This document shows positions 8,321 through 56,300 of a stretch of DNA of 64,000 bases, piece by piece. A program made the translations under genes and the position numbers. Every line of letters begins with the position of its first letter. Positions within the stretch are counted from its first letter, which is position 1. Source of the DNA: Anthoceros angustus (taxonomy: Eukaryota > Plantae > Anthocerotophyta); the NCBI GenBank assembly GCA_010909165.1, contig MU008160.1, forward strand, positions 1,612,001 through 1,676,000. The letters run 5' to 3'. Below the pieces are notes generated by a model, which had not been told where the DNA came from, did not search any database, and saw only the letters and a list, made by a program, of their open reading frames with translations.

Positions 8321-9049
8321 AATTTCGGAACACAACCAACGGGCAAAGGGTAAGGGAAAGAGGAATTCCTGGGCGTCACAGCAGGCGTTACGAGCAAGCT
8401 CCAGACCCGCCCCGTGCCAATCCCTCGATTTCCTCCTCCGTTGTCAGAGTGGTATAGTGAGTATGGCGATTTCTCAAGAGGTGTGAAACACAAAAGTTTA
8501 GGCCCCTTTAATTTTTTTATTAGAGTTGACAAAACATCGATCAAAACGGACTCGAAAAAGTGCCAAAAGAATCTGTTAGTATTCCTTTATGGAAGCTTAG
8601 ATGCAAGTGAGTGCAAATAAAGATCTAGGTAGAGCCAGATAACTTACATGCAGGAAGGGAGCTGCATGTAGGGAGGAAAGCTAGCATGAAATGATGTGGG
8701 GGAGGCATCAATTACACAAGGGAAAGACGAGTAGGAAGGGTGTGTTGTTCTATGGATGGTATAGGGCAGTAGTTGGCCCTACCAGAATGGAGTGGGGCTC
8801 CTTACATGGACAGTTTAAGCAAGCGCATAGGATGTCAAAAGCTAGTCCTACAGACTTAGGGTGATAAGGGTGACCCTACATAGATAGGTCCTTCACGCAC
8901 GCCTCCTTTACCTGCAACACACATTTCTCCTACCCGCCAGCCACTTCCCACTATCGTTTCAAAAAGGAATGTTGCAGACATATATAATTAGGTAGTAGGA
9001 ACTCACTACTTCATGGCTGGAGTAGTGAGTTCAACCCTAAGCTGCCACC

Positions 9050-9545
9050 GCAGTCTTCCAACATGGCCACCGTCCTCCCACACCGCCGCCCTCGCACCTC
9101 CTCCCATACCATTGCACACCCCTCTCCTCCCACACCGCCGCCCTCCCACCTCCTCCCATACCATTGCACACCCCTCTCCTCCCACACCGCCATCCTCGAA
9201 CCTCCTCCCATGCAGTCTTTCAACATTGCCACCGTCCTCCCACGCTGCCGTCCTCCCACCTCCTCCCATACGACTGCACACCCCTCTCCTCCCACACCGC
9301 CATCCTCTTACCTCCTCCCATGCAGTCTTCCAACACTGCCACCGTCCTCCCACACCGCCACCCTTCCACCTCCTCCCATACTACTGCACACCCCTCTCCT
9401 CCCACACCGCCATCCTCCTACCTCCTCCCATATCGCCACCCTCCCACCTCCTCCTATACCACTGCACATCCCTCTCCTCCCACACCGCCATCCTCCTACC
9501 TCCTCCCATATCGCCACCCTCCCACCTCCTCCCACACCGCCACAA
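9050..9545. repeat. C-rich minisatellite, about 10 units of roughly 36-58 bp with alternating subtypes
   Basis: Recurrent core CCTCCCACACCGCC...CCTCCTCCCATA, followed by either ..TGCACACCCCTCT or GCAGTCTT..CACCGT. Confidence 0.85.
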
Positions 9546-9892
9546 ACCCTGCCTCCCACATCACCACCAACTTCCTCATTCTCCTACATCATCACTAACT
9601 TCCTCATTCTCCCATACCACCACCAACTTCCCCATTCTCCCATACCTTCTCTCATCTACCCTAAACACCACCATGCATAAACACAAGCAACCTCGCCCTG
9701 ATCTCGCGCTCCACTTCCACAATATGAAGCACATAAGCCACAACTAAACCCACGAACCACACTAAAACCCAAATTCGAGATATTTTAAGGTGTATGTGAA
9801 ACGGATTAAACAAACCCCCGTTTTTACCATAATCTACTTAACAAGTTATCACTCCCATTTTATGATGGAAGTGCTACACCTTAGTGTGCATA

Positions 9893-11370: not shown

Positions 11371-12722
11371 GCTGTCCGCATGCCTGAGGAAACTTCGGGT
11401 TCGGAGGAAGGATCCGAGGAGCCTACAAGAGGGGTTCCGATTAGGGACATAGTGTTGTATTCTTTCTAGTCGCCAAGTGCGGGCGTGATAAGAAAAGTCC
11501 GAGCAGGATGTGTCGAAGTATGTAGAAACTCATTTAGTAGCAGTGGAAACCATTTACCGTTGCACGACCGATATACCGCAGTCTACTTCCGTAATCTACC
11601 AGGCCAGAATGCAAGTTGTAGAGGCTCCTTCCAGTAGTTGTGGAAGTCACCTGCCGTTGCCAGACTTATGCATCTCCGTGAGGCCGACATGCACGGGGCT
11701 TAGATGCGAGGCCCGTGCGTTCCAGTACGCATTCTCGTAAGTGGGTCTGAAGGAAAAGGAAGGTTCTGATCTGGTCCAATGAGATTAAGTAGGGGTGTGG
11801 GGAGTACGAGGGGTCCGTGAATTGAGCAATATGGGCCCATGAAGCTGTTGCAGAGGTTCTTACAGCAGAGCTGTGGAAATCGTATGTGGGATGAGGTGCA
11901 GGAGCCGGTGGGCCCCTTCCTTTCCTGGATGATGATATACAAATATGGTCATGGCAGCCGGTGCGTCGTGTGAGCACGTCCCCTTGGATCAGCTCCACTC
12001 TCCACGCCCATCCCCTTTTAGTCTCCAGGGGTCCCATGCCAGAGCTGCTGGAGCGCGGTGTATCCTGGCACTTCGTGGATGTCAGCTGACTTTCTGTGGG
12101 TTGCAACCGCTCGTTACTGTGCCTTGGCTGTGGGCTACCCTCTCTCTGCTGGGCGTCATGGCTGCTTCACGGGATCTCTGTCACACAGTGGCTGTCTCGT
12201 TGGCTGCCTTGATGGACTGTGGATCGGTCCGGCTAGATCTCCAGCCTCGCTATTCCTATTTGGTGTCGTTCTGCCCTGCTCCACCGGCCCAGCTCACGAT
12301 AGCTGGCCAGACAGATGCTTGGTCCTCGCACCCGCTTCCTCCTCCAAGTCCCCACATCACCGCCTGTTTGCTCCACCAGCTGCCTCAATGTCCCCACATC
12401 CGACCCTGCAATGATAATTCTCTAGCGGTATCTTGATTTTGATGCATACAGGTTGGATGATGGGAGCCCATAATAGGTCTCCTACTGGAATGCTAGACTT
12501 TTCCCACGACTTTCACCACAGGCTGTGCCCATCGGTGAAGTGAACTAAGGGCTTACCGAACTCCGGGGGAATTGGGATCCAGTCTTCTTTCACATTTAGA
12601 TCTTCGTCATATTCCTCGTCCTTCTGCTGAGTCCTTTGAAGAGAAGGGGTATTTGTCATAGCAGACGGCGGTTCTGCTTACAATACCGGTGGCAGTGAAT
12701 GCTCTGATCTGTCGAGCATCAA

Positions 12723-15700
12723 ATGGAGGACAAGGGGTTTAATTCCATGTTCAGACTGAAGCACACAGAATTTGCCAAGATGCTTCTGAGTCAGACCCAA
12801 GTTTGTAGGTATGCGTGAACCAATTGGCGGATCAGTTTAACAGCTTGCTGAGAGATAGAGTGGAATCTGCTCTTGATTTTGGGGGCAGGTATAGGATGGG
12901 TGATCAGCATCTCACGGATATCATCAGCAATGTGCGAGCGATTGGAGTCATACTGGAAAAGATCTCTCTGCAATCACAGGATATTCAGCTGAAAAGGGTC
13001 TCAGTCGATCCGACATCTATTGACAACGACAGTCTGGAGTTTGTGACTGCCTTTATTGGCAGGCTGTCTGCTCTAGAGAAGGAGATTGAGGCGAGTGGGT
13101 CTGGCCGTCCTGTGTCTCGTGCTGGGGAGAACGCCCTTGACAAACTGCGGAAGGGTATACATCAGGCAGGAACATCTCTTGGACTCGCTGGTCGACAAGA
13201 GGTACACATGGCTGATGTTGCGATGTGACTACCTTGCCGTGCATGCAGTAGATGGAAATTGTGCCGTTGTGAAACCACCTGAAGTTGATGAAAGCCTTAG
13301 CTTTAGTGAAGAAATGACTCCCTGGTTCCAGTCTGAATGCCTGTTTCTTGCTTGTAGGTGGTTGTGGGACAAAAATCACCGCTGCTGTTTCAGCGCAAGG
13401 ACCGCCACCTTGATGATTTTGAAGATTTTTTCTCAGCTTTGGAGGACGATGAAAGCAACGAAACACTTCTGATCAACACAGCTCTGTTATGCTCGAAGGC
13501 TGATGTTACATCCAACGGCCACAACAGGACCAGCTCCTGGTTTGGTTGGTCTAAAGCTGCAGGTTCTATGAGAAAGGGCTCGGAATCTTCTTCTCCTGAT
13601 GTGCGCAAGGGGAAGCTTGCACGATTCGGACGATCTAAAAGTGATGCTGAGATTACAGCAGCATTGCTTCATAAGGATGTTGGAGTTAAGAAATCACCAG
13701 GGAGGAGCATCAGCAGATCAGAGCGCACAGCCGGTGGACTACTGAGGAGGCTGGCATGCTGTCTTCGGCCAACAGGTGGTTCTCAGGTATCTTACAGTAG
13801 AAAGCTTCTCGAGCTCATACAGCTGCATCCCACGTTGCTGTAAAATCAATTTCTTAGGAATTCAAATGCTGGGCACATAGCAAATGGTAGACTCTGATCT
13901 ACATATCTTGGGACAACAGCAGCAAGTAGGGAGAAAGGGCTGACACAGTCTCATTGCCACCTAGGTCTCCTCTGTCAGTTACACACCTGATGCTGCTCAG
14001 GACACAGAGAAACTGGGCAGTCAACTGCTTGCAAAATTGCAGTACTGGGACAAAGAGCTGGCAAGATTGAGGGATCAAGCAGTCAATTGTGGAGCCTTCT
14101 TACGCAAAAGCCATCTTACTGTAAGTGAAAGGCGAATTTTTAGTCCTCTAAAATGAGGCAAATTCCAGCTTCTGATCGAGGGCTTCTCCCCTTGTAGGAA
14201 ATTTGCACCGGTCTGGGGCTGAAAAACACCCCACCTACATATGTGAGGGTGAAGAGGCTTGCGGATCTGGTCTTGCAAACTCTGAGATCTGGCCCACATA
14301 AGGTTGTCTTGCTTCATGGCGTGTTTGGTATGGGCAAGTCGCTCCTTGCACTCGACATTGCACTTGAGCTTGAGAATGGTGAGCAGTTGATGTAGGTGGT
14401 TGTTGCAGACGTTTCCAGCAGAATGCAATCTTGTACAGCTGCATGTGAACTAGTGTATACATGCATGTGAAATTTTGGGATGCTGCTCAGGTCTTGATTA
14501 TCCGGGTGGTGTATATTATTTACACTTTGGTGAGAGATTTGGAGAACACTGCGATGAGGCCGAATTAGACACTAAGATAATAGAGCAGCAGAAGCTGCTG
14601 ATTATGCTAATGGCTTATGATGGTGAAAAGGTGTCGGAGACTCCAGGTGTGTCGAAAGCAGACACAACTCAGTTACTTGCTTCCAAACTCTCAGGTGAGC
14701 ACATTTGGCTCACTATGCTGTAGTTATTTTTGATGCCCCGGTGACCATCATGTTTCGAATAACCTTCTCTTCTGTAAAACAGGAAAGCGGTCACTTCTAA
14801 TTATGGATGAGGTTTGGAGTCCAAAAATTGTGGAGAAGTTCATGTTCCCCGGGCACAAAGGCAAGCTACTTGTGACAAGTAGCCTCGGGCTGACTGGAAG
14901 TATGCTGACTGATGACAATATACAGAGGCAGTGTGTGGGGAGTGCTGGAGTTTCTTCCTGCACCCTGATCCAGGTTGGGTCAGACGATTACTATGGCAAA
15001 CAGGTTGACCATCAGATTCTTGAGTCATGTTCGTGGACAACTATTGATCCAGACCGGAAGGTATGTCCCACCATATCCTTGAAGTTTGCAAGCTACACCC
15101 TTCGTAACTTGTGCGGTGCAGTGAAAGATGATGAAGCGTTTGGCTCTGTTTAGGAGTCAGCTACCAAAATACTGGAGACCTGTGGTGGTTGCCCTCTTGC
15201 TCTGAGCATAATTGGGGGCATGTTACGAGGCAAAGATGCAACTGCATGGGCCAAATTGTCAGCCGAGCTTCAAATCCTGCTTGAAGGCCTGACAAAGAAG
15301 GTGTCAGAAAGTGGAGCCACAACCACGTCAACAGACGCTGATACGTCTTTCTATTCAGCTTCCATGACCCTGAAAGATGAGGTCAGGGGTGTTGCAGATG
15401 GGTCTTTCCTTTCAATGCGCAAGAGCAACTTCAGTGATCCATCCTTGCAATGCTTTGATGTAAATTCATACTCAGCGGCGTCAAATTTGAAAGATGATGT
15501 GAGATTTGTTACAGAGGGGTCCTTCCTCTCTATGCGCAGCAACTTCAGTGATCCTTTCCTCAACAATATCGGAGTTCCCACAAGGACTGGTTCTTGGCGA
15601 ATAGATTCCGTTCGCATTTCTGATCCTGGCATCAAGGTGGCACCTGCTCCAGAACAGAATGTGGAGTTCTGGGTTATAGAACCAAAACGTTTGCCCGGTC

Positions 15701-18700
15701 CTGATCCTCACTCAGTACTGATTGGGGTGATTGACCTGTGCCTTAGCCACCTACCAACCGAACAACAGAATGCATTCAAGGCAATGAGCCTGTTTGAGAG
15801 CGAATGTCTGATTCCTGCACCTGTGGTGGAGCTTGCACTCGAGGTCACAGGTGGCAAGTTGGCTTCACAGTTTACGCAGCTTATGGGCCATCTTGTGCAG
15901 TCAGGAGTGGTGTGTCAGAACGTTGATAAGGTTAGACTTGCCTTTTACCATTTATTATTGTGTGTGAAAGCATTCTTACGGATTTTGGTGAAGACTTGGA
16001 AGTTTCAGAAGTTTATGACAAGGTGAAGTTCTTGACTTGTTCATATTCATGGCAGTGATATGGTTCTTTTCGCTGTTGCAGAAATTTTACTGGGTCCACT
16101 CCATGATCTCTCGATACTTGGCTCGATATCGTGCAGACATCGGCACCTCTGTCCTACAGGTTCATCCAGGTCGTTTGAGTCCGGATGTAACAACTGAAAG
16201 ATCTCGTGGTTTAAACATTGGACGTAAGATAAGGCTACTTAATGCCTTTCTGCTTTCCTATGGTCATGGTGATCTGAGGAAAATCTCTGTTAACCAGTTA
16301 GGGCTAGAGTCTTCCGTGTTGGGAGGAGTCATGGATGATGTACAGCAGATGGCTTTCTCCATGTACACAGAGGAGGGAAGGTTACCAATTTTGGAGCCTG
16401 AGCATCAGGCTGATATGGTCTTGGCAGCCACTTTGCGCCAGTCAGGGAATCTAAGGACAAGCTTAGGGGACTTGAAGGGTGCTCTTGCTGAGCTAAACAG
16501 ATCGTACAAGTTAAAGCCGGACCACGTGCTCACGCTGCAGTAAGGCTCTTCACCCATTTGTCGATTGTGCATTTGACTTTGAGAAAACGTCTGCACAGAC
16601 AAGCACAATGTCAGACAGCACAAGAGTTATTCTATATTTCTGACCTTGGTTGAAGTAGCTAGCAGAAATGCCTCCTGAACATATGCAGCTCAAGGCTTGG
16701 CCATGCATGTGTGTGTCAGGATGAGGGGAGCTATCTTGGTGCATTTTGAAGATTACGAGGCTGCCCTGGCTGATGTGGACAAAGCTGATGAGCTCGCACC
16801 CAATGACAGCTTTACCCTTCAGTACTCTCGAATAACTTTTCTGGTGTGATTCAGAAGGTTTCCTTTGACACCCATTAATTACAGGTGGCCTGTTCCAGAA
16901 TTCGGGGCAACATCAAGCGGTGTGTGGATGACAACGAAGGGGCTCTGCACGATCTGGAATTGGCAAACGAGTTGGAGCCAAATAAGAGCTTCACTCTCAG
17001 GTTTGAGTTTTTGTAAACCGAAATTTGACACATATCCAGCCATATTCACGACTAGAGAGAACAGTGGCTGCAGAAGCAAGGCTGAAGTGTTAAAGTTTAT
17101 TGTGCAGTGTCATGGGAGCTGTCAAGCTCAATCTCGGTGACTATCGTGGTGCATTGATGGATCTGGATAAAGCTGCCCAAATTGAGCCCAATGACCACTT
17201 CATCCTCACGTATGAAGAGTCCGAGCAGCCGTCGCAGATTAGCATATTTCTGAGTTTGTGCTGTTGCCAACTGAAATCCATGGGTTGCCTCTGGTGTAGA
17301 GTGAGAGGCAATACAAAGCTCCATTTGGAAGACTACCAAGGAGCGATGGAAGATCTTGACAGAGCCTTGGACAGGGCCCTTGAGCGGCTATCCTCCAGCA
17401 AGTCCATGTCCAAGTCAGTTTGTGACAACCATCACCTTGGGATCAGTCGCATCCATCCCGCTTACTCCTGATCATCGACCATAAACTCTCCCCATGTCTG
17501 CAGTGCTGTATTGGACAAACCAGTCGATGGAGCACAAGATCCTAACAGAAGCTTCACGCTCAGGTTTAATCAGCGTCTACTCTTGCCAGAACAATATTAA
17601 GTCTTCTTGCTGGATGCTTGAATGTCTGTGTGGTTACAGTGTTAGGGGAGCCGTGAAATTGAACACGGGAGATCTTCAAGGAGCTTTGGCTGACCTCGAT
17701 GAGGCTGATGAGCTGTACCCCAACGACAGCTTCACTCTCAAGTAAGTTTTGACCTAAAGTTTTGAGCTAGTATGTTTCTCGCGAGTTGATGAAATCTGAG
17801 GGATTAGATCAGAATGCCAGATTTTTGTCTGCGCAGCTTGCGAGCAACAGCAAAGGTTCAATTAGGAGACTACACAGGAGCGCTGGAAGATCTCAATCAT
17901 TGCTGCGAATTGGATCCCGATGACACGGACGTCCTAAGGTACTCTACAGTTTCTTGTGCCTGCTCATATATTTGAGGGGAGAGCTAGGTCCTGCTTGTGA
18001 AGTGCATGTTCTAACGTACGAGTTTGGTGTTCCAGGCTAAGAGGCAATGTCAAGAGGCTCTTAGGTGACTGCAAAGGGGCACTGAAAGATTTTACCAGGA
18101 GCAATTTCATGGAGCCACGGAACAGCTACACTCTCAAGTACCCGTTTCTTTTCTTTTAAGGATTGTTGATGATCGTTTTAGTTGTGTCTGACATATTTGG
18201 TTCTACCAGATTCAGAGGAAATGTGAAAAGGTGTCTAGGTGATCACCGTGGTGCACTGGAGGACCTGAATCTGGCGAATGAGTTGAAGCCAGATAACGCC
18301 TACACTTTGTTGTGAGTTGTTGCAATGCGTCTGACATGATGTTCAGAAGGGAACCTCATTTCATAATACATTTACTGACCGTTCCTTGCGCGGCAGGATA
18401 CGAGCCAGTGTTAGAGGACTCATGGGGGATCATGAAGGTGCTCTGGCAGACCTCAACCAAGCTCTTCGGGCAGAAACAGCCAGTGCTTTTGGACTTCTAG
18501 AGAGAGGGGTGGCCAAATACGTCACAGGCGATCTCGAAGGAGCTCTCCTCGACTTAGATAGAGCTTACAAAATTCAACCTCAAAATGCAGATATTCTTAG
18601 ATATCGAGGACGTGTGAAGTTCCTCCTCAACGATGTCGCAGGAGCTAAAGCAGATCAGCTTGAAGCCGGTAGTAGGGAGGTACCAGAAAGGTCTGTTGTG

Positions 18701-18748
18701 ACTTGTCTCGGTCATTTGCCTGTGGAGTCTGTCTTGCTCTCGGATTAA
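12723..18748 (+). CDS. NLR-like STAND ATPase: unknown helical N-terminus, NB-ARC, TPR array (about 18 exons)
   Basis: P-loop GVFGMGKS (14318-14341), Walker B LLIMDEVW (14794-14817), RNBS-B KLLVTS, GLPL-type GCPLAL (about 15187-15204) and VHS at the MHD position (16094-16102). TPR exons follow at 16720-16821, 16899-17000, 17108-17209, 17300-17413 plus 17504-17563, 17640-17741, 17837-17938, 18036-18137, 18210-18311 and terminal exon 18397-18748. Start ATG 12723 assumes intron 12809-12888; ATG 12896 is an alternative. Confidence 0.88.
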
Positions 18749-18878
18749 GATTAATTATCCAAAATCAGCTTCTCCTCCAAACATTCTTTCTAATAATTTA
18801 CCGGATGAACACTGTATAAAAAGCGAAAGATTACCAGTGTCTTATTTCATTGGTACAAAAGAAACCTCCAAAACGTGA

Positions 18879-20954
18879 CTAGACGTCAGCATTCGAAGTG
18901 CCCATTATATGGAAAGGTTGCTTCTGCTCATGTGCCTGGGAATACTCTGCGGTTCTCCCATCGTCCTTGCTCTGCTGAGCAGGCACGACAAAGTCTGGCT
19001 GGTTATTGATTGATCTGATCCAAGCCCATCTGTTATCGTTAACATTAACCACATGCTGAGTGGCTGCGACTTTATCAAGAGGGATGTAACAATAGCCCCC
19101 GTTAACTGGCCCTGCCACAAATCCCGTGTACCCAGCCATGGCCCCATGTACTGCAGAATGAGCCAACAATGTGCAGTAGAGGGTGTCTGCGGAATTGCTT
19201 GGAACAGCTCGCACCATATATGTAGGATCGATATACTTCAGACCAAACGGCTTGTTAGGATTCACTTTTTTCCAATACTGCTTCAGCTCTTTGCTCAACC
19301 AGGCGCCAATATCCTGCAACAACAGGTTCCCTGTTCATGACGACAAATCAGCTGAACATCTATAGATATTTGAAAAACAGTTTAGATAATATCCCAAGAT
19401 TATAGGAAAGTACTGACGGAACAAGAACTGAATGCTGGCAAGTTTAAACTGCTTGCTGAAATTGTGAAGCCCCGAGGACCGAGACTTGCCTGATTCATCT
19501 CTATCATCTCCATCACCTCGTGGTATCAGATGTTGCCCCGCCCCTTCAGCCGTAACAATGACCATATGCCCATTCTCAGCTATTCGATGATTCAGAAACT
19601 CTAAAAGACCGCCTTTTCCTTCCATGAAAAAGGGAACTTCTGGAATGAGGCAACAATCCACATCCCTGTTGCTGAGCGTCGCATGCACTGCAATGTGTCC
19701 AGAATATCGGCCCATGAGCTTCACCAGCCCCACACAATTAGGCGTGCTCTCCGCTTCGGTGTGTGCAGCGTTGATCGCAGCTTGGGCAGCCTCCACGGCA
19801 GTTTGAAACCCGAATGACCTGAAATCCCTAATTATCAGCAAAGCTCACTGACAGAAAACAAGCAGTTGAGCAGGGACGACAGTTCAAAATACCTGTCTAT
19901 GATGCCCACATCATTGTCCACAGTCTTCGGGATGCCAACTACTGAAACCTTCAACTTTCTCCTCTTCACCTCGTCAAAAATCGCAGTCGCACCTCGCATG
20001 GTTCCATCACCACCAATTATGTACACTTGATTCAATCCACGGGCCTGCAAACACGCACTGGAAGCGGATCGACAACAATTCGAAACAATCTACAGCAGCC
20101 TTCCAACGTGGAAAGGACAGCGAAGACTTACATCTCTGAGACTAGCTCCACACTCTCTCCCAAAGAATCTGACATACCTCAATGCTATCAACGATCTTGT
20201 TGAGGTCAAATCCTCCTCTGGTAGTGCTAAGCATCGTCCCACCTCTCTTATGCCAATCGTCCACAACCTTAGGATTCAGCTCTTTGTAGTTTGCCCCGTA
20301 GAAACCACGATACCCTGCCACAACGCCTCTCACATTTTTCACACCATACTGCAAGCAAAGAGTGTTCACCAGCTCCCGGATGACAGTGTTTATCCCGGGA
20401 CAAACTCCACCACAAGTCACAATCGCTGCCTTCACGTCATCTGTTTTATAGTACACTCTCTCTCGCGGCCCAGCTCTGCGGTAGTGAGCCTGATGCAAGG
20501 GCTTGCTAGTGTCCACTGCCACTTCCACCGAGATCATGTCGGTGTCTGTCACATAGAACCCGTCCACAGCATGGAAGTAAGGATTGTAAGCCAGCGGACT
20601 CTCATAAGTCGGTAGCTCTGGCAGATATTCACGCAAGTGAGGAATTTCGTGGAGGACAGGATACTTCGGAGCCATTCCCTGCGCGTTTCCGTCCGGCTCA
20701 AGATTGGATCTCACCACACCGCTCCTCACCCGTTGCTTGCCATCTATGTTTACCATTCTCCACGAATTTTCAGTCCGGTGCCCCAATCTGATCGAGCTCC
20801 CAATGGATCCAGCGCAAGCAGCCCCGCCGTAGCATATCCGTGCCGCTGCCACACGTTCTGCCCGAGCTTCCGAAGCAGTGCTGCGGGAAGCAGGCCAGCG
20901 AATGCGGATGAAGAGACGATCCCTGGCAGAAGCCGTAGCAGCAGTGGCAATCAT
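18879..20954 (-). CDS. PFK2: ATP-dependent 6-phosphofructokinase, PFK2-like, 4 exons
   Basis: [85 protein letters not shown]. The start is uncertain: ATG 20954 (Ala/Ser/Arg-rich transit-peptide-like extension), 20756 or 20675. Confidence 0.93.
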
Positions 20955-21406
20955 CTCGCTGATCGTCCTCAGCTCACGGGTTACTCGCAAACCGGCCAAG
21001 CGTGAAGTGAAACTCACCGAAACAGCCAGGCACAGGGACACATGGCTTGCTCACAGTCCTGCACTTGTTCGTTCCAGTGGCAACCCGGAACGTTGTTCCC
21101 AGTACGTTTCTTACTTTCGGGTTCTTCCAGGCTTGTGAGTACCAGCTCCTGACAATTGCGGCCATTGGTTTTCCATCAAGGTTGCAGGAATCGTGTATTC
21201 GGTTGAAGTAGAGAGGGCTGAAGCAACGAAGTCTCGTTCCTTTCACACTGGTTTCTGGGCGCGCCGGATTTCCTCGAGTGAGTGAGTTGAGTTTCCTCAG
21301 CGTACACCTTGTGTCTGGGCCTGCCGATTCCGTTGAGTGATTTGAGTTCCTTAGCGCCAGACCAAAGCTCCTGGATCCATTGGGAGCTTGATCAGATTGG
21401 GGCACC
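20777..21406. repeat. 36-bp inverted repeat pair (20777-20812 and 21371-21406)
   Basis: GGTGCCCCAATCTGATCGAGCTCCCAATGGATCCAG versus the reverse complement of CTGGATCCATTGGGAGCTTGATCAGATTGGGGCACC, with one mismatch. Confidence 0.9.
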
Positions 21407-22960: not shown

Positions 22961-24289
22961 AGCTTCCTCTGCCACAGTTGATGGGCACCGGCTGTTGTCT
23001 CGCAGCCTGTGTCATTAACATGTGGAGGAGTCCCGTAGCCTACACAAAGGACCTTCTGATGCATGGCAGCAGAGTAGGTAATCTCAGGAGCTTACCGCAC
23101 GGTCTCGAGGAGCAATGTATCTGAGCTTTGGGTTTTTTGCTGGTACTTCCCTGCTGTTGGAAAGAACCTGGTGCGTCTTCACATGGTGCTATCTACAAAG
23201 TACATTTATAAAGTCTCCGAAATCGCTGAAAAAACAATCTTCACATGGTGTTGGTGTAACTTGTTGTCTCTACACTGCCGATGGTTCTTTGCCGTCTGTG
23301 CTCGTGGCCTGGCCACCAGCAGAATACATTCACAGGCCCCTGTAAATTGTCACAAGGGACGAATTCTTGGGTGAGCAGTAATGGTGAGGACGAATTCATC
23401 TCAGCCTGGCTGCAGACGTGATGACAATAGTGGCGGTGGAAGTACTCACCAATGCCTTTCCTCTACAAGGCTTGATCAATACAAGTTTGGCACAAGTCAT
23501 TTTTCTTACTTTCCGTTTCTTCGACACTGACCTCTGGCTTCTCAAGGTGTTGTGCGTCGACTCAGTGCTTCTTCATTATGTCTTCAATGTTACAGAGCAA
23601 AGGCAAGCCAAGATTGCTACTGCAGAACTGTAGCTAAGCCGGGAATCGCTCAATGAGCTCACAGCCTCATTTAACATTGTCACACTGTTGTAAAACTTAG
23701 GTCAAGAACCGTCTGCATTGTAGCCAAGTTGCACGCCTGGATCAAAGGCAGGACTTGCTTTTAGGAAATTAGGTTTGAAGTTCCCAGAAACAACACGTAG
23801 TAGCGGAGACTGGTACACGCAGATAAGCCCCGGTAATCGTCCTTCATGTCGTGTTCTCCCAGGTTGGGGGCAGGCAGCGACCTGAGATGTTTCAGCACCA
23901 GTGGCTAAACATTATTAGCCCTTGTCGTGATCGCAAAGGACGGCTCGATTTCCCAGAACCACGGCAAGAAACGCATGGACCTCAAATCTCCAGATTGCAT
24001 TCAAAGCTAGCTAGACTCGGGACATCGGAAATGCCGATATCCGCTTTGCTTGCCCTCGGGAAACAAACCGGAGCGATCACCGAACAAGCATCGCAAAGCT
24101 AACAATTCTGCTAGATAAACTGACGGTGTTGCTCGTGCGGCTCCACGCAGTTCAACTACTTACCCGAGTTAGTTGACTTATATCAATTCAGTATATTATT
24201 ATTCTAGGGTATACTTTGAAAGTTTCTATATATCATAGATTCCTAATAAGGATAAATTACTCCTCCTCTATATATAAGTTGTAAGGACT

Positions 24290-25560
24290 GCCAAGAGAGA
24301 CTATACATCTTGCACATTAACTCTTGTAATGATCCTGCTAGGTATCCTCATATCCTAGTGGTTTTTTTCCATTCTATTTGTTCCATGTGGTCATAGTAAG
24401 AGTGTTAATCTAGTCGTGTATCATGCTTAAGTCTACTCTATTCCTATTGTATATCATGCTTTGACTGCTTGGTGTTAAAGATTTGACACAGAGGAGTTTC
24501 TCTTACTGCGTCCCTTTGTGAAAGAATTAACTTTGACAATGAGAAGTTTCTCTTACTTTTTTCCGTTATGACAGGATTATTTGAGTTTGAATTGGAACAT
24601 CGATGAGAGGCGTTATGCATTTTCTGTTTTTGTTATTTCAAAACAAGGTGAGTATCATTCCGAGTTTGAATTGGAGCACTGTTGAGAGGCATTTTGCATT
24701 TTCCGTTCTCATCATTTCACAACAAGGTGAGTATAATTCACATTCTTTTACGGTCTTATTTCCTAAAAGTACTGATCCAATCATGTACTAAACCTTCACA
24801 TAATATTCTAGAATATTTTAGGACATACTCTTGCAGCTTTTACACATGAAAGATTCATAGTAAGGTAACTTAAGCCCTATATAAGGGTCATCAAGAGAGG
24901 GTCTTAGTGTCTTGTTGTGAGGAGTGGGTGGCTCATACTTAATTATTTTTCTGGTGTCATGAGAGTTTTTAGCATCAATTATATACATATTATATACTTT
25001 TAAGATTAGGTAAATAATTCTCAAAATTATGCCAAGAGAGACTAGATATGAGTGGATCCCTCACACTATTTGTTGTATTGATCCAACTAGGCATCCTCAT
25101 TCTTTGGTGGTTGTTTTGTGCTCTGGTTGTTGCGTGTGTTCATAGTAAGAGTGTTGATCCAACTGTGTTCATAGCTTTGACTGCTTGGTGTTAAAGCTTT
25201 GACGCTTGGTGTTAAAGCTTTGATTATGAGTTTCTCTTACTCTCCTTGTGTGAAAGGATTAAAGCTTTGATACTTTTGAGTTTCTCTTACTTCCTCCCTT
25301 TATGATGGAATTGTCTAAGTTTAGATTGGAGCACCGCGGAGGCTTCTCAACACTTTTCTAATTGCTTTCTCATCGTTTCACTACAAGGTGAGCACAATTC
25401 ACATCATTTTAAATTGTTATTTTCTTTCCTAATTCCTTGCTCGTTGTTTCACCACAAAGTGAGCACAATTCACATCCTTTTACATTGCTATTTTCCGAGT
25501 ATGTTGATCTAACCAGATGTAACCTCTTGTGAAGCTTCGGAATAATGTAGAACATGCAGA
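24290..25560. repeat. Diverged direct repeat pair (about 500 bp each, near 24290-24800 and 25035-25560)
   Basis: Shared blocks in the same order: gagagacta, catagtaagagtgtt, gctttgactgcttggtgttaaag, gtttctcttact, acaaggtgag..aattcacat. A partial third copy lies near 25730. Confidence 0.7.
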
Positions 25561-25939
25561 CACAAAAACCAGAGGCAGGTTCAAAGGAGAGGAACCGCTA
25601 GGTACGAGCATCTATGCTAGAAACCCGAAGTCCATGTGTGGACCCTAGAGAGAGCAACCTCCGATCCATCAAGACAAGTCCAATTTCTTGTCACCCTTTA
25701 AATGTCCTTTCCCGAACTTTTTGACTATATGGTGTTAGAGCTTTGACATTTAGGAGCTTGTCTTTGTAGGACACAAGTTTGTGACTCTAAATTGCGGCAT
25801 CATGGACCTTGTCAACATTTCTCCGTGTCCTCTTGATGGTCGATCTACAACTAGGTTAGTCACCTAGTTGTACAAGGTGAGTGGAATTCATGATCTTTCT
25901 TTTCACTTTTTTAATATTTCTCGTCCATTAACCACTGAC

Positions 25940-26460
25940 CCTAAGCAATTGTATATTTATTCTAATTGTATGTTTATTTTCACATTCTTAAAAATTTAAC
26001 TAAAGAATAAGTATTCTAAATGAATCTTAATTTATCATAAAAATCAGAATGAATCTATTGAAGAATAAAAATGAATCTATTTAAGAATAAAAATGAATCT
26101 ATTTAAGAATAGATATGAAGATAAATTGAAGAGATAATTAAAAATAACAAATAATCATATGAAATAACTTCAGATTAATCCACAATATAAATATTATAAT
26201 AAGATAATATTAATACTAATTAAATTATTTAATGATTGAATAAAATATATTTAATAAGAATAAATAAAATAATCTAATACGAAAGAAGATATAAAGATAA
26301 ATATTAAAACTAAAGTAAAGGAATCTAAATTAAATTATTTAATTTAAATATAAAAATACATAAATACTAATAAATATATTTTATAAGAATAATATCAATG
26401 AAGATAAAGTAATATGTGTACTTATGAAATAATATTGATTTAGAGGTTCTTCAGCAAAGT
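25940..26460. other. Extremely AT-rich low-complexity tract
   Basis: Visibly G/C-poor, with repeated aatctatttaagaata and aaataa motifs. No ORF of 60 aa or more. Confidence 0.8.
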
Positions 26461-26678
26461 TGATTAATTAAGTTATAGATTTTTCAGAAGACTTAAACCC
26501 TAAACCGTAATTAAGTTATCACTTCCACATGTTTGAATAATTAATTCACAGATTTTGCATAAGACTTAAACCCTAAACCCTAATTAAGTTGAAGATTTTT
26601 TAGAAGACGAAAACAGGTTGCAAGAAACTTCACTAAGTTTTAGGTTTGCAAAAGACTTCAGCATGTTTTCAGGCGTAG

Positions 26679-26870
26679 GTTGAAGATGTGTTAGAGGAAT
26701 GAAGGAGGAGCGGGGTATCATGTCACAGATGCAAGTTGAAGATGTGTTATAGGCATGAAGAAGGAATGAGGTTTCAAGTCACAAGTGCAAGTTGAAGGTG
26801 TGTTAGAGAAATGAAGGAGGAACGAGTTTGAGGTCACGGGTGCAGTTGAAGACTTTTAGAGAAATGAAGA
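26679..26870. repeat. 56-bp tandem repeat, about 3.5 copies
   Basis: gttgaagatgtgttagaggaatgaagga.. starts at 26679, 26735, 26791 and 26845. Confidence 0.8.
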
Positions 26871-27143
26871 CTTCTACAAGGAGAAATGAAGACTTATACT
26901 AGGAGGAACAAAGAGTCCTAACAAGAGAAATAAAAATTCTTACTAGAAGGAAACAATTGGTAAGAGGATAGAGACTCCTAACCATGGCCTTTTTCTTTCA
27001 CACGTTTCCCTATAGACTTGTTAATTGTTTTTTTTTCAGCTGAAAATCGATATTGAGGGAAGCTGACTTGCCGCGTGATAGTGGGGATTTGACCTAGTGG
27101 TTTTTTTTCTAAATAATTTTTTTAATAATTTTTCTTAGGGAAG

Positions 27144-27340
27144 AAGGTGTTCTCAATTTCGTGGATATGCTCTAGCATTAACTTGACGCGTGATGGTGGG
27201 GATAGTGAGTTTAACACTTTTCTTAGCTAAGGTGTTTTCAATTTTGTGGATATGCTCTAGCATTAACTTGACTCGTGATGGTGGGGATAGTGAGTTTAAC
27301 ACTTTTCTTAGCTAAGGTGTTTTCAATTTCGTGGATATGT
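27144..27340. repeat. 85-bp tandem repeat, about 2.3 copies
   Basis: caatt(t/c)gtggatatg starts at 27154, 27239 and 27324. Confidence 0.9.
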
Positions 27341-27379
27341 CGTAGTACTAATCCCTCGGCGACAGATGATTTCGGACCC

Positions 27380-27960
27380 TTACAGACTTCCAGGTTCCTC
27401 AAACTGATATTAATTTTGTTGGGTAGTTCAGATTCCTCAAACTGATGTTAGTTCAGTTGAGTAGTTCAGTTTCCTCAAACTCATGTCAATTTACTTGAGT
27501 AGTTCAGTTCATCCAACTCTATGCCAAGTATACAATTTTGAATTGATACGAAGTGTATAGTTTAGTTTCGAATTGGTTTAGTTGAACTATGTCAAGTGTA
27601 TGCGAAGTGTACAGTTCAGTTTCGAATTGGTTCAATTGAACTATGTCAAGTGTATGCGAAGTGTACGGTTTAGTTTCAACTTGGTTTAGTTGAACTATGT
27701 CAAGTGTACAGATTAGTTTCGAATTGATGTCAAGTGTACAGTTCAATTCCAAATTGATGACAAGTGAACAGTTCATTTTCAAATTAGTTCTGTTGAATAG
27801 TTCAATTCATCGAACTATGTGCTAAGTGTACAGTTCAATTCCAAATTGATGACAAGTGTACAGCTCAGTTTCGAATTGGTTCTGTTGAGTAGTTCATCGA
27901 ACTATGTGCCAAATGTACAGCTCACTTTTGAATTGAACAATTTAGTTCAAATATCCAGCT
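27380..27960. repeat. AGTTCA/TGAACT-rich satellite with a 54-bp period
   Basis: gaactatgtcaagtgta starts at 27584, 27638 and 27692. Many AGTTCA motifs occur in both orientations, including the palindrome GTTCAATTGAAC. Confidence 0.85.
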
Positions 27961-29329
27961 GAACTGGCTCGCGAACTAGCTTCTCGGACAAACAAACGCA
28001 CAGAACTAAACTAGGGTCGATTGGAAGTGAACTCCCCAAAATCAGTACAAAAAGTAAAGTGGATGGAAGTGACTAGTAAAAACTATATATATATATATCA
28101 TCTTAAATCATCCAAACTATGAGTAATCGTGACAGTTGAATTCAAGGTCGGGAGCAATCCAACTGCTAGTCAATCATTACTTATTAAATCAGCGCATTAT
28201 GAGCAAAATAGTTACCATGATCATTATGTCCGTGCACCGGTTCGAGCTCAATCCGATGTTGACCTGGCCTGGAACGAAAATGGGCGAGCTCCCGAACTGG
28301 CGGTGCGAAAGGGTCCGACATCGGGGGGAATGGCGGAATTTGAAGCACTGCATTTAATGTTCTGATGGCGAGGCTGAGCACGTGTAATATTTCTACGATT
28401 TGAAAAATTCTGTTTTTGGTTAAGGTATTGCATCCATACTATGTATGTATCCATGGGCTCGCAATCTGCTTATTCTTCTTGTGCTCCAGATGTTGTGCTT
28501 CTCTGATTTTCTGCTTTACAGTTTCTACTTTGCGTTTTCTTCATTTCTTCCGTCCTCTTCTTGGGGCTTTGGCTCCACATGAAGATTTCTGGTGCTGTCA
28601 TAAATGTTCAGGCCGCCAAAGCATTTTTATTTTGCAAAAGCTGGAAGCATCTCAGATGTAGGGAAACTGTTGAAGTTATTAGTTAGTCTAGTGTAGAGTG
28701 ACATCAAGGAATTCAAGAGCCAGCGATTTGTACTTCCGTATCTGCATGCAAGTTGAAGGTGATGTGGTCTTTAGATATCCGCTTCCAACTTGCAAGTTTG
28801 TCTATCCATGCCTGTGCAGACATGAGGACAGAGAGTGGATGGATAGACTTCGAAGGCGGGTGCGACGTAGCCAATAGTCACTGAGTGGGTTGAACAACGG
28901 ATGTTTGTTGCTAATGTATTTCAAATTCTTGTGTGCCCATGTACCTTGTCGGACCTATGCTCCTTACGTCATACTCCATGACACCACCATGCTCCTTTAG
29001 TCACTTAGGGAATATTGTTCAGCCATATGCAGTATTGCTTCACTTTGCACACTTGCTAATTCAGGAGGAAGCCTTAGGATTTGTCAGCTTGCTTTGGACA
29101 AGTATTTCGTGACCATGCAAGAGCAGAGGAAAGTGTAACAGTACATCTTTCGCACGTCCTACAAACTGGCAGATGATAATATTTATTGGTGCTTTTTGGG
29201 CTCACGTAGAAAGTGCCGAAGTGTCACAGACTTGGGAACCCCCTCTCTCACCTTGTTCCAGTCCATCGAAGCATGTGGACATCCATGGAATGTAGTGGTA
29301 AGGAGAATGAAGTACAAGAGGCTACATAA

Positions 29330-36508: not shown

Positions 36509-38023
36509 ATGGGTGTCCAGAGCCTTCTCTGGGCCGCGCTGCTCCTGTGCTGCCTGCTGCAGCAACATCAGGGGGCGGAAGCTGCCACAAAGGTAGCCTT
36601 GCACAAGAAGTCTTTGGACGCGAAGGGAGTGCGGAATGCAGCAGCGGCCATCAAGGCTAGGGAAAGGGGGCTGAACAGAGAGCAAGGGGCGGTGGCTTCA
36701 TCCCCCGACTACGTTGCGCTCAACAATTTCTTGGATGCGCAGTACTATGGCGAGATCGGGCTGGGCACGCCGCCTCAGAGGTTTACCGTCATCTTCGACA
36801 CCGGTAGCTCCAACCTGTGGGTGCCGTCGTCCAGGTGCTATCTGTCGCTGACCTGCTACTTCCACCACAGGTACAGCTCGGGCAAGTCCAGCACGTACCA
36901 GGCAAACGGCAAGGCATTCGCCATCCAGTACGGGAGCGGGTCTATGTCCGGGTTCCTGAGCCAGGATGATCTGACGATCGGGGATTTGGTTGTGAAGAAG
37001 CAGGTGTTTGCAGAGGCCACGAAGGAGCCCGGGCTCACTTTCCTGGCTGCCAAGTTTGATGGGATCCTGGGGCTGGGGTTTCCGGAGATCTCTGTGGGCG
37101 GGGTGGTACCTGTGTGGGACAACATCTGGGCTCAGGGGCTGGTGCCAGAGAATGTGATATCCTTCTGGCTGAACAGGGATGCTGATGGGAAGGATGGGGG
37201 GGAGCTAGTGCTTGGCGGGGTTGATGAGGAGCACTACACTGGGAGCCATGCGTATGCTCCTGTGACGAAGAGGGGGTACTGGCAGATCGAGATGGGGGAT
37301 GTGAGGATCGGGGGGAAGAGTACTGGGTTTTGTGCTTCAGGGTGCCAGGCTATTGTGGATTCCGGGACCGCCTTGCTGGCTGGGCCCACGGTCATTGTGG
37401 CTGAGATCAACCATGCTATCGGGGCCACCGGGGTGGTGAGCCAGGCTTGTAAGCTGGTGGTGGAGGAGTACAGTGATGTGATCATCGGGATGCTGCTGGA
37501 GCAGGTGGAGGCAGGGAAGATATGCAAGCGTCTTGGGTTGTGTGGTCGTGTGACTGGTGCTGATGCTGTGATCAGGACCGTGGTGGATGAGGATAAAAGT
37601 AGTGGGTTGGGCAAGGAGGCTGTGGGGAGGGATGCTGCATGTGCTGCGTGCGAGATGGCTGTGGAATGGGCGCAGAACCAGCTGAGGGACAACAGGACCA
37701 AGGCTCAGATCGAGAGGTATTTGGATGAGATTTGTGACAGGCTGCCTAGTCCTATGGGTGAGTCTGTGGTGAGCTGTGCGGATGTAGATACCTTGCCCGA
37801 TGTCAGCTTCACCATTGCCGAGAAGGAGTACATACTCTCGCCCAGAGACTATATCCTGCAAGTGGGCCAGGGGGCGGATGCGCAGTGCATCAGTGGGTTC
37901 ATCGGGCTCGATGTTGCACCCCCTGCAGGTCCTTTGTGGATTCTTGGAGATGTGTTCATGGGTGTCTACCACACTGTTTTTGATTATGGCAAGGAAAGGG
38001 TTGGCTTTGCCAGAGCTGTGTAA
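36509..38023 (+). CDS. Phytepsin-type A1 aspartic protease with plant-specific (saposin-like) insert, intronless
   Basis: Single 504-aa ORF with a signal peptide, DAQYYGEIGLGTPPQRFTVIFDTGSSNLW, IVDSGT, PSI cysteines (CKLVV..CKRLGLC..CAACEMAV..CDRLP) and ILGDVFMGVYHTVFD. Confidence 0.96.
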   Translation: MGVQSLLWAALLLCCLLQQHQGAEAATKVALHKKSLDAKGVRNAAAAIKARERGLNREQGAVASSPDYVALNNFLDAQYYGEIGLGTPPQRFTVIFDTGSSNLWVPSSRCYLSLTCYFHHRYSSGKSSTYQANGKAFAIQYGSGSMSGFLSQDDLTIGDLVVKKQVFAEATKEPGLTFLAAKFDGILGLGFPEISVGGVVPVWDNIWAQGLVPENVISFWLNRDADGKDGGELVLGGVDEEHYTGSHAYAPVTKRGYWQIEMGDVRIGGKSTGFCASGCQAIVDSGTALLAGPTVIVAEINHAIGATGVVSQACKLVVEEYSDVIIGMLLEQVEAGKICKRLGLCGRVTGADAVIRTVVDEDKSSGLGKEAVGRDAACAACEMAVEWAQNQLRDNRTKAQIERYLDEICDRLPSPMGESVVSCADVDTLPDVSFTIAEKEYILSPRDYILQVGQGADAQCISGFIGLDVAPPAGPLWILGDVFMGVYHTVFDYGKERVGFARAV

Positions 38024-53315: not shown

Positions 53316-56300
53316 AGGCATGATGATCTATCATCTTGAGCAATGTAATTGACAACTCCATGAGCAGCATAGATCTATGTTGCTCATGGAGTTGCTTTGA
53401 CAGTCCCTTAGTGAGCAGGTCTGCCACATTCTGAGTTGTAGGCACATATTGCAGCTGTATTATCTTCTGCTCCATTGCTTGTCGAATATAATGAAATTGG
53501 ATTTCGATGTGTTTGCTGCGAGCATGTAAGATGGGGTTTGCTGATAGGGCAATAGTAGATTGATTGTCGCATTGTAAGATTGTTGCTTCGGTCTGCTTAA
53601 CATGTATCCCATCAAAGAATTGTCTAATCCACGTGATCTCCCTGGCTGCAAGTGACAAGGAGATATATTCTGCCTCTGTTGAGGACAGACTGATGGTGGA
53701 TAGCTTTTTACTCTGCCAACTGATGGCTGATCCGCATAAGAGCATACAATAGGCTGCTATAGACTTCCTGCTATCAACGTCACCCGCCTAGTCAGCATCA
53801 GAATAACAGGTGAGAGTAAAATCACTTGTCTTGGTATACTTCAAACATAAATGTCTGGTTCCCTTTAGATATCGTAATATTCTCTTGACCACTACCCAAT
53901 GGCGCTTTCCAGGATTGGAGAGATAACGAGATACTATACCAGTGGCTTGAGATATATCTGGTCTGGTCCAGCCTGCCAGGTAGAGGAGGCTTCCTACAAC
54001 CTCACGGTAAGGGATTGCTACCATTTCTACTGAGCCATCAGGGTTAAGCTTGAGCTTGAAAACCCACTTTGAAGTGATGGCTTTTCTATCTGCTGATAAC
54101 TTGACCAATTTCCAAGTTTTGTTGTCAACTAGTGATTGGTATTCGCTATCTATAGCCTTCTGCCACTCTGAGCTTTGTAGAGAACTAAGTGCCTCTTTGT
54201 ATGTGAGTGGTGTGTCAAGAGGCTCCATGACAGTGAGGGCTACGTGTTTAGACATCTGGGCTAGACTTATACGCACATTGTCAGATGCACTAGGACCTGA
54301 TTGTGAGATAAGCGTCTCACTTGAAGTGTAAGGAGGCTCTAACCATCTGCTAGGGCGACGAATTCGAGTTGACCTACGCAATGGGATCTGATCTACTAAA
54401 AGTACGAGCTCTGCTTCTAAATGATGTGCTGGTGGTTCAGGCATATCTGCTGAAGGCATATCTTCATGTGGTTGTTGTGCAGGCTCATGATCAACAGGTT
54501 CATGTTCAGCAGGTTCATGTTCAGGAAGTACTGGTTCGTCAGGTGCTGGATCTGGTTGTTGAAGTAAAATGTCCAGTGGTGGTACTGGCTCTACAATATC
54601 TGAATCAGGATCAGAATCATAGATTGTGTGCAGAAAAACTAGGTCAGGTTCTAAGGCTGCGTGTGTGTCATTGAAATGTTCAGGTGGTGTGTGTCCATAA
54701 ACTAAGGCAGTGGATAAGGGAGCATGGCTGCTGCTGGATTGAAGATGGGACTCCAAAATGAAAACCTCATTGAAACTTATGCTTTTGGCTATGGTGAGCT
54801 CCCGGGTAAGTGGGTTGAATAATTTATAACCCTTTATTGTATCAGAATATCCAACGAACACATGCTTTGTAGCTCTATGATCCATCTTGTGCCGCTTGTC
54901 TGAAGGCACATACGCATAAGCCACAGCTCCAAAGGTACGTAAATGACTAATGCGTGGTTTGTTGCCGGACCAGCGCTGATAAGGGGTTGTATCATAGAGA
55001 GGCTTCAAAGGCAGCCGATTAGCAATGTAATTGACAGCATCCATTGCTTCGGCCCAATAACCTCTGGTAAGTCCTGCTAGTTGCAAAGTTGCTCTGGTCC
55101 TTTCTTGTAAGGTACGATTGTAGCGTTATGCATAAGGATTCTAAGGAGGATGGTGAGGCACAGTTAATTGATGTACAATGCCTTTCTGTTTGCAGAAGTC
55201 GGTGAATTCTGCGCTGAGATATCACTTAGCATTATCACTACGAAACCGCTTTATCACATGGCCTGTTTGTGCCTCTGCCATTGCAGTGTACTCTTGGAAC
55301 TTGGTGAAAACTTGCTGTTTGCTTTTCAGGAAATAAAGATGATAGTAGTGGCTCCATTCGTCCAAGAAGGAGAGAAAATATATGGCCCCACCAAAGGAAT
55401 AGGTTGACATAGGACCACATACGTCTGAATGATGACCTCTAGCAGGGAGGATGCACGTGTAGGGGAAGGATCATTATATGGTTTCTGTGTAAGTTTGCCT
55501 ACTTGACAGCTCTCGCAGAAAAGTGAAGGATTGGGTTTAAAGGTAAGACCATCCTTGTATAAATCTGAATGTTGAATTATACGCTGGAGATAGGCTAGGC
55601 TAGGGTGACACAACCTACAGTGCCAGAGGAAAGATATACTAACTGCTGGATGTGCATCTGCAACATTTGACTGTTTTGTGGTCTTCTGATTGTCACCAAT
55701 GGTGATGTGCAGGTGATACAAATCATGGTAGGGGTAACCACACGCTAGAACAAGTGATGGCTATGAGATAGGTGAAACTATACATGAAACAGGAGTGAAA
55801 GTCATCTGCAAGCTATGATCACAAGTTAGTTTATGCGCGGACAACAGATTTTTTGTCATACTTGGCACATGTAAGACACCCTTGAGCATGATGTACTGTA
55901 CATGATTTAGTAGTAGCTTGATTTCACCAGTCCCTTGAATGGATAGACCGTTGTCGTCTCCCAGTAATACGAACTGATTTGTTGTTGATTGATGATAGGT
56001 ATAATACATCTCCCTGGAGTGACAGATATGATTAGTGGCGCCGGTATCAAGAAACCACATGTTAGTATCTGCTTTTGTTAGGGATAGACACACTGCTAAA
56101 ATTGCTGGTGCCTTTGTATTGTTGGGGGCTGGTCTAACAGCTACATTTGTCTCTAGTGCAGGTCGCCTGGGCTCTCCTGCAGCTTTCTTACGGCATTCAT
56201 TCTCATAATGCCCGGGGATGCGACACCAATTGCAGGGACCTTTAACCCTATGTGGTGCTCCATTGCTGGATGTTGCAGCATTGCTGGGTGTTGCAGAGTA

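Follow-up and report, generated by a model that had tools for sequence, protein, structure and literature searches.

In the brown alga Ectocarpus, 24 genes encode an NB-ARC domain together with tetratricopeptide repeats (TPRs), and half of these genes are clustered with pseudogenes (Zambounis et al. 2012, PMC3341825). In about half of them, every repeat is encoded by its own symmetric exon of 126 nucleotides (nt), i. e. 42 amino acids that comprise a TPR and a linker, and the genes exhibit fast birth and death, signs of exon shuffling, and positive selection (PMC3341825). [quoted passage not shown] They bear a TIR domain, nearly all of their genes are intronless (PMC9806590, PMC5662649), and in one study only the P-loop was detectable in their nucleotide-binding site (PMC5662649). 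Here, we describe a gene located in a 64-kb stretch of contig MU008160.1 (64,000 nt; this entire stretch is called the window) that is a new, apparently lineage-restricted member of the NB-ARC-TPR proteins of the STAND (signal-transducing NTPase) type. Its coding sequence occupies positions 12896-18748 on the plus strand, with 18 coding exons and 17 introns specifying a protein of 1342 amino acids. With a probability of roughly 70%, we regard this protein as a conserved STAND switch that consists of an N-terminal region, an NB-ARC domain and about 13 TPRs, and whose repeat array is ancient and has since been frozen. As parts of this joint explanation, the gene would be intact, expressed and constitutively spliced in a non-seed land plant, the N-terminus would be lineage-specific, helical and disordered but devoid of a TIR domain, the NB-ARC would be of the plant type, and the symmetric phasing of the repeat exons would be a relic of the construction of the array rather than a working mechanism of diversification.

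The gene shares with its Ectocarpus counterparts the order of the parts, an NB-ARC domain followed by a C-terminal TPR array, and the use of one symmetric exon per repeat. In contrast to Ectocarpus, the repeat exons are 102 nt long and in phase 2, the window contains one such locus, the order of the exons seems to be frozen, selection appears to be purifying, and the NB-ARC is probably of the plant type. A first-pass annotation of this DNA had correctly pointed out that exon-per-repeat NB-ARC-TPR genes exist in the brown alga (PMC3341825); the exons there are, however, of 126 nt (42 amino acids) and not of 102 nt.

The TPR array and its exons

Seven intervals of the gene are exactly 102 nt long, each preceded by AG and followed by GT, open in phase 2 and free of stop codons: 16720-16821, 16899-17000, 17108-17209, 17640-17741, 17837-17938, 18036-18137 and 18210-18311 (all on the plus strand and in phase 2-2). 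Their prediction as exons was borne out by the sequence and by the junctions in RNA from four public runs. This RNA evidence consists of contigs rather than raw reads, placed on positions 12760-18755; run X1 matches the window to at least 99%, and runs X2, X4 and X20 stem from relatives that differ in about 4-6% of the nucleotides. The contigs display the junctions of the repeat block at 16539/16720, 16821/16899, 17000/17108, 17209/17300, 17413/17504, 17563/17640, 17741/17837, 17938/18036, 18137/18210 and 18311/18397. Altogether, 15 of the 17 intron junctions of the gene, including upstream ones, are seen in the RNA contigs, and the joints in the three relatives (about 95% nucleotide identity) are identical to those in X1. 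The assembled transcripts of the four organisms contain a single isoform, as judged at the contig level at which rare isoforms drop out. The depth of X1 is level across the NB and TPR exons, and the gene was detected at moderate depth in all of the 22 listed RNA runs.

The rule of one repeat per exon applies to these seven exons, but it is not the whole array. The 430-nt stretch 17210-17639, which had been taken for an intron, contains two RNA-supported phase-2 exons that had been missed, one of 114 nt (17300-17413) and one of 60 nt (17504-17563), both on the plus strand and in phase 2-2. The two exons encode one TPR into which about 24 residues are inserted: the first part of the repeat and the insertion are found in the 114-nt exon, and the end of the repeat in the 60-nt exon. 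The joints 17209/17300 and 17413/17504 are present in four out of four RNA runs, and the donor of the 114-nt exon is GTCAGT. An eighth 102-nt exon at 17300-17401 with the donor GTCCAT was considered and rejected, since the RNA places the donor at 17414. Moreover, about four TPRs stand outside the exon-per-repeat scheme: one of them ends the exon at 16082-16539, and about three, followed by a short tail, are encoded by the last exon (18397-18748, plus strand). In total, the protein has about 13 canonical TPRs of 34 amino acids.

The assignment of the repeats is based on a profile of tandem 34-residue helix-turn-helix units with G8, A20, A27 and P32. In the array, the columns G8, A20, L21, D23 and P32 show no or almost no variation. 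Pfam scans of single exons matched TPR models with six of the eight repeat exons scanned, i. e. five of the seven 102-nt exons, among them 17837-17938 (TPR_9, E 1.4e-6), and the 114-nt exon. The last exon exceeds the Pfam thresholds for both TPR_11 (E 6e-8, 32.7 bits) and TPR_2 (E 9e-8, 32.1 bits). In these scans, the C-terminus yielded only TPRs and no leucine-rich repeats. Residues 2-29 of an exon correspond to profile positions 7-34, so that the codon broken by the intron belongs to about TPR position 5, within helix A. Each 102-nt exon is therefore one repeat length, with its register offset by five residues.

The introns that separate the repeat exons are in phase 2, as had been claimed, and measure 72-107 nt; the upper limit of 180 nt given before belongs to the intron that precedes the array. 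The exons end in CA, CA, AG, AC, AA, AG, AA, AG, AA and TT. No exon ends in TA or TG, and it follows trivially from this that a stop codon cannot arise at any junction, as had been stated. Several donors are indeed non-consensus, but this is no distinctive property of the array: the donors GTACAC, GTATCT and GTTAGA are found in non-TPR introns of the same gene, and all of them are spliced.

Conservation of the array and the question of diversification

The search with the ARC exon led, through the close cluster P0001, to a 10-kb genomic contig (L001) that bears the entire orthologous gene. The two loci are syntenic: in either one, the NB-ARC-TPR gene is followed by a PFK gene on the minus strand. 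All exon pieces of the window align to L001 in the same order, and the repeat exons of L001 measure 102, 102, 102, 114, 60, 102, 102, 102 and 102 nt, with order and phase as in the window. Taken in their order along the window, the counterparts of the first three 102-nt exons are L001:5840-5941 (73% amino acid identity), L001:6040-6141 (85%) and L001:6243-6344 (82%); those of the interrupted repeat are L001:6427-6540 (114 nt) and L001:6612-6671 (60 nt); and those of the last four 102-nt exons are L001:6760-6861 (82%), L001:6946-7047 (67%), L001:7160-7261 (79%) and L001:7332-7433 (64%). In comparisons of the repeat exons, all seven of 102 nt pair with their positional orthologues as reciprocal best matches (64-85% at the amino acid level); between paralogous repeats of one species, the identity is 30-64%. 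The synonymous differences between the window and L001 are saturated in every exon (proportion of synonymous differences, pS, 0.57-0.96), and the phytepsin from the sample of L001 is 69% identical to that of the window. By these sequence distances, the two lineages are deeply separated.

Across this distance, the proportion of nonsynonymous differences (pN) is 0.145 in the exon-per-repeat block as compared to 0.17-0.32 in the other exons, with the exception of exon 5 (0.116). The conservation is uneven within the repeat: TPR positions 5-14, which form helix A, are about 87% identical between the orthologues, as against about 68% for positions 17-30 in helix B. Even those positions that differ most among the repeats, such as 5, 6 and 13, are conserved between the species. 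Helix A lines the concave groove of the TPR superhelix. As far as can be judged from comparing coding sequences, the TPR block is under strong purifying selection and among the most constrained parts of the protein.

These findings bear directly on the idea, put forward in the first-pass annotation in analogy to Ectocarpus, that the ligand-binding array is diversified by exon shuffling during evolution or by combinatorial exon skipping. The design of the gene would permit this: all nine internal repeat exons are in phase 2-2 and cannot form junction stops, skipping is thus frame-safe, several donors deviate from the consensus, and the existence of rare isoforms is compatible with the contig data. 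However, the expected isoform diversity, variable number and order of repeats, and diversifying selection are largely contradicted by what we found: The contigs of four organisms contain one isoform with an even X1 depth over the TPR and NB exons; a syntenic orthologue at saturated synonymous divergence agrees in the number, size, order and phase of its exons, with exon similarity following position in seven out of seven cases; and the repeat block is among the most constrained regions, with a low pN at saturated pS. In addition, a tblastn search of the 64-kb window gave matches on the plus strand only, all at the gene's own exons; neither the introns nor the opposite strand contained TPR relics, and a paralogue or local gene cluster was not found. 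Thus, the relic exons, antisense exons and local cluster that are all present in Ectocarpus (PMC3341825) are missing here, and introns of 72-107 nt leave no room for a concealed exon. Finally, non-consensus donors also occur in introns outside the repeats. Taken together, the shuffling hypothesis is largely refuted already at the evolutionary level, and we regard diversification of the array by either route as extremely improbable.

We favour the view that the array is ancient and frozen. Its origin would be an ancient tandem duplication of a single unit made up of a 102-nt exon in phase 2-2 and a short intron, and construction from such an exon-intron unit would place all introns in the same codon of the repeat. 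Afterwards, the array would have been frozen, each repeat keeping its own identity under purifying selection that acts chiefly on helix A. If so, the gene is a case from land plants in which a repeat array was built from a single symmetric exon and then remained unchanged for a very long time. It would serve as a counter-example to the practice of taking symmetric repeat exons as the sign of a diversity generator, and it opens up no new mechanism of receptor diversification.

The NB-ARC domain, the N-terminus and the place among NLR-like proteins

In agreement with the first-pass annotation, the protein has the three-part architecture of an NLR-like protein, with an N-terminal domain, NB-ARC and the C-terminal TPR array. 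The NB-ARC region is encoded by exons 4 to 8 on the plus strand. Exon 4 (14198-14378) contains the Walker A motif or P-loop GVFGMGKS (14318-14341, amino acids 338-345), which fits the pattern GxxxxGK[ST], and exon 5 (14491-14694) covers the RNBS-A region. Exon 6 (14783-15060) carries the Walker B or kinase-2 motif LLIMDEVW (14794-14817) and the RNBS-B motif KLLVTSS (14863-14883). In exon 7 (15154-15930), the GLPL motif CGGCPLAL (15181-15204) is followed by a duplicated insert and then by the winged-helix region. Exon 8 (16082-16539) begins close to the MHD-like motif YWVHSMI (16088-16108), in which the MHD position reads VHS with the His retained and the Asp substituted; it continues with a helical linker and the first TPR, for which there is a weak TPR_11 match at residues 122-147 of the exon, and it ends in phase 2. 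The kinase-2, RNBS-B and GLPL motifs are ordered and collinear with those of the canonical plant NB-ARC proteins P0003 and P0004.

The profile scores are less clear-cut. Exon 4 has weak Pfam matches to AAA_16, NACHT, NB-ARC and nSTAND, and exon 7 matches positions 184-223 of the NB-ARC profile (E 1e-4); for the region as a whole, NB-ARC is the top-scoring Pfam family. The gathering threshold of the Pfam NB-ARC family (PF00931) is 23.5 bits; scored as exon pieces only, the P-loop exon reaches 13.3 bits, the GLPL exon 21.9 bits, and the orthologous piece P0001 23.9 bits. The best matches in the PDB are all weak (E 0.07-1.1); for exon 7, they are Roq1 and NRC4, two NB-ARC proteins of plants that align at GLPL, and for exon 6 Apaf-1 with E 1.1. 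A language-model comparison places exon 7 among STAND winged-helix domains, including those of TANC1 and NWD1. Exon 5 is the most conserved NB exon, with 81% amino acid identity to L001 and a pN of 0.116, and the pN of the ARC exon is 0.302. The insert that separates GLPL from the winged helix contains two copies of an approximately 30-residue motif (15355-15447 and 15472-15561). This insert is lineage-specific; the motif reads LKDxVR..GSFLSMR.SNFSDP.L, and both copies are retained in L001. A match of the insert to the highly repetitive protein P0002 (2827 amino acids, E 8e-14) is probably spurious and was discarded; it is composed of eight matches of about 30% identity with 26-36 bits each.

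The N-terminal 297 amino acids are encoded by three exons on the plus strand. Exon 1 (12896-13201, amino acids 1-102) encodes an N-terminus that is predicted to be helical. The coding sequence was set to start at the ATG at 12896, since the transcript is unspliced in the leader and contains an in-frame TGA at 12875. The alignment with the L001 orthologue begins precisely at the Met of this ATG. A start at 12723 with an intron at 12809-12888 was rejected because the X1 contig is unspliced there and holds the in-frame TGA. The last 47 amino acids of the exon are identical in L001, and an AlphaFold2 model shows three helices at low confidence (predicted local distance difference test, pLDDT, 52). 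N-myristoylation of the MGDQ start was considered and is not claimed, because the Asp after the Gly breaks the PROSITE rule. Exon 2 (13358-13786, amino acids 103-245), the junctions of which are present in RNA, encodes a low-complexity linker that is probably disordered; it shares 53% amino acid identity with L001, with 22 gap columns and a pN of 0.319. Within this linker, the islands SSWFGWSK, GRS.S and LLRRLACC are conserved across the saturated divergence, and they may represent linear motifs or lipidation sites. Exon 3 (13965-14120, amino acids 246-297; junction 13786/13965 in RNA) is helical, precedes the NB domain and is 68-69% identical to its counterpart in L001.

A Pfam scan of amino acids 1-297 at E<=0.1 matched no family, the TIR domain included, in agreement with the earlier statement that a TIR domain is absent. 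The N-terminal regions have no detectable similarity to coiled-coil (CC), RPW8 or TIR domains and no match in PADLOC, which gave only generic P-loop matches, and a database search with these regions returned no protein except the L001 orthologue. For exon 1, a language-model atlas search remained below the recognition level. The linker exon and the N-terminal alignment were searched against 5.8e9 proteins, and an exhaustive phmmer search of 1.84e9 representatives with the ARC exon resulted in only four matches; it picked up canonical NLRs at weak scores and found no protein of the TNP type. Besides pieces of the open reading frame (ORF) of the L001 orthologue, the searches with exon pieces matched only angiosperm NLRs, weakly and at GLPL. 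All these searches used exon pieces, and a length filter hides full-length relatives, so that blanks are weak evidence. The gene appears to be lineage-restricted. The genes around it resemble those of plants and comprise Gpi16, PFK, a transporter of the OPT type, a copia element and a phytepsin that carries a saposin insert. The best named relatives of the phytepsin are from mosses (60-64%), a lycophyte (57-62%) and liverworts (58-60%), with similar values for seed plants, in support of the land-plant origin that had been assumed from the beginning. None of the entries is nearly identical to it, and the source is most likely a non-seed lineage with scant coverage in annotated databases; from the base composition and the size of the introns, one might guess at a hornwort.

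The set and order of the NB-ARC motifs, the helical N-terminus and the three-part STAND architecture are shared with canonical CC-NLRs and TNLs of the NRC4, Roq1 and ZAR1 type. Unlike in canonical NLRs, the sensor is a TPR array instead of leucine-rich repeats, and it evolves slowly rather than fast. Moreover, a linker with much disordered sequence and a length of about 195 residues precedes the NB-ARC, and the ARC region contains the duplicated insert.

With the TNP proteins, the gene has in common that it is a conserved, apparently low-copy NLR-like gene with TPRs in place of leucine-rich repeats and a purifying mode of evolution. One might therefore think of the TNP orthologue (TIR-NB-ARC-TPR) of this lineage after the loss of the TIR domain: the TNPs are a conserved, low-copy, TPR-bearing NLR-like class with an N-terminal "X" region (PMC9806590, PMC5662649), the gene described here is likewise conserved and apparently low-copy, and its approximately 140 disordered residues are located about where the TIR domain would be. 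Yet there is no TIR signal at E<=0.1, and the gene has 17 conserved introns, whereas the TNP/XTNX genes are nearly all intronless with no shared introns (PMC5662649). Only the P-loop was detected in the nucleotide-binding site of XTNX (PMC5662649), whereas kinase-2, RNBS-B and GLPL are plain here. The exhaustive search with the ARC exon also found weakly similar canonical NLRs but no TNP-type protein. Altogether, we consider descent from a TNP very unlikely.

TIR-less genes that combine an NB domain with TPRs are mentioned for the charophyte Klebsormidium (PMC7145615), and for bacteria and fungi (Dyrka et al. 2014, as cited in PMC9806590). The NB domain of the Klebsormidium proteins reportedly has no typical R-protein signatures (PMC7145615), whereas these signatures are present here. 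The order of the NB-ARC or NOD and the TPRs and the lack of a TIR domain are common to all of these proteins, and the searches with exon pieces detected no relationship of our gene to any of them. The repeats of the fungal and bacterial NB-TPR proteins are mostly of the 42-residue TPR_10/12 type. In any case, the gene would add a TIR-less NB-ARC-TPR protein to the non-canonical NB-ARC proteins that are catalogued for non-seed plants.

How might the protein work? If it is a STAND switch, the TPR superhelix could bind a conserved ligand or partner protein through its helix-A groove and keep the NB-ARC in an ADP-bound off state. Binding or loss of the partner would then allow nucleotide exchange and oligomerisation of the NB-ARC, and this oligomerisation would gather the N-terminal helical domains and thus produce a signal output. 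The slow evolution of the sensor suggests a conserved ligand or a guarded host target.

The same architecture could also serve a purpose outside of immunity, as a housekeeping or developmental STAND scaffold for a conserved cellular process, comparable to P-loop proteins of animals that bear TPRs, such as NPHP3 or TANC. The strong purifying selection on the sensor, the conserved synteny without local expansion, the presence of the transcript in all listed RNA runs at moderate depth, and the winged-helix neighbours TANC1 and NWD1 are in line with this possibility. On the other hand, the DEVW, LLVTS and GGxPLA motifs belong to the plant NLR type, as do the best PDB matches, the apparent restriction to one lineage is unusual for a core cellular function, and the repeats are TPRs of 34 residues in contrast to the 42-residue type of NPHP3. 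We thus consider a non-immune scaffold a rather doubtful alternative, albeit one of some weight.

It is tempting to speculate that the gene is the founder of an undescribed NLR-like class of land plants with a helical N-terminal domain, a plant-type NB-ARC, 34-residue TPRs and no TIR domain that is confined to one non-seed lineage, possibly the hornworts, and the sensor of which is conserved because it monitors a conserved ligand derived from the host or a symbiont. We put this forward as a tentative proposal with somewhat less than an even chance of being correct. If true, it would contradict the view that the TNPs are the sole TPR-containing NLR-like class in plants (PMC9806590).

Several points weigh against the interpretation of the gene as a conserved STAND switch with an ancient, frozen array. 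For the transcript, contig-level RNA data lose rare isoforms, and one undisplayed joint among five in the RNA contigs is unaccounted for. For the protein, the N-terminal fold is modelled only at a pLDDT of 52, and the NB-ARC was scored exon by exon, with the pieces from the window remaining below the cut-off (21.9 versus 23.5 bits). The comparison covers two deeply separated lineages and close relatives, the depth of conservation thus resting on one orthologue, and the copy number was surveyed within the 64-kb window. Finally, the function is inferred from the architecture alone.

Transcript ends and neighbouring genes

At its 5' side, the X1 contig is unspliced over 12760-13199 and extends 722 nt further upstream (window positions about 12038-12895), which reflects either a very long leader or a merger with a neighbouring transcript. 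The stop codon of the gene is the TAA at 18746-18748. A 5832-nt X1 contig runs from the TPR exons beyond this stop codon for about 4.7 kb more (window positions 18397-21041) and probably reaches into the PFK gene, which lies convergently on the minus strand. The NB-ARC-TPR gene and the PFK gene have their 3' ends no more than about 200 nt apart, perhaps even with an overlap.

Among the neighbours, the phytepsin, an aspartic protease with a saposin insert, is encoded at 36509-38023 by one uninterrupted ORF of 504 amino acids. Its counterpart from the same organism as L001 (L002, 4001-5545) is 69% identical and also uninterrupted, thus the gene is intronless in both. The copia element, a long terminal repeat (LTR) retrotransposon, is represented on the minus strand at 53788-57023 by ORFs for gag, a Pol beta-barrel domain, an SH3-like domain and the start of RVT_2. 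Two ORFs without a Pfam match contain tandem repeats on the coding strand: 25 copies of 18 nt at 61533-61973 in the ORF 61115-62275, and six copies of 54 nt with 95% identity at 63154-63474 in the ORF 62993-63961. The stretch 9013-9747 is strongly C-rich (GC skew -0.38) and composed of tandem repeats nested within one another (periods 26, 52 and 110 nt), and it lies inside a proline-rich ORF of 244 amino acids without a Pfam match. Finally, positions 24000-28000 form an AT-rich island with a GC content of 0.32-0.38 as compared to about 0.48 elsewhere and with tandem repeats with periods of 21-92 nt, which is probably a decayed repeat or transposon region.

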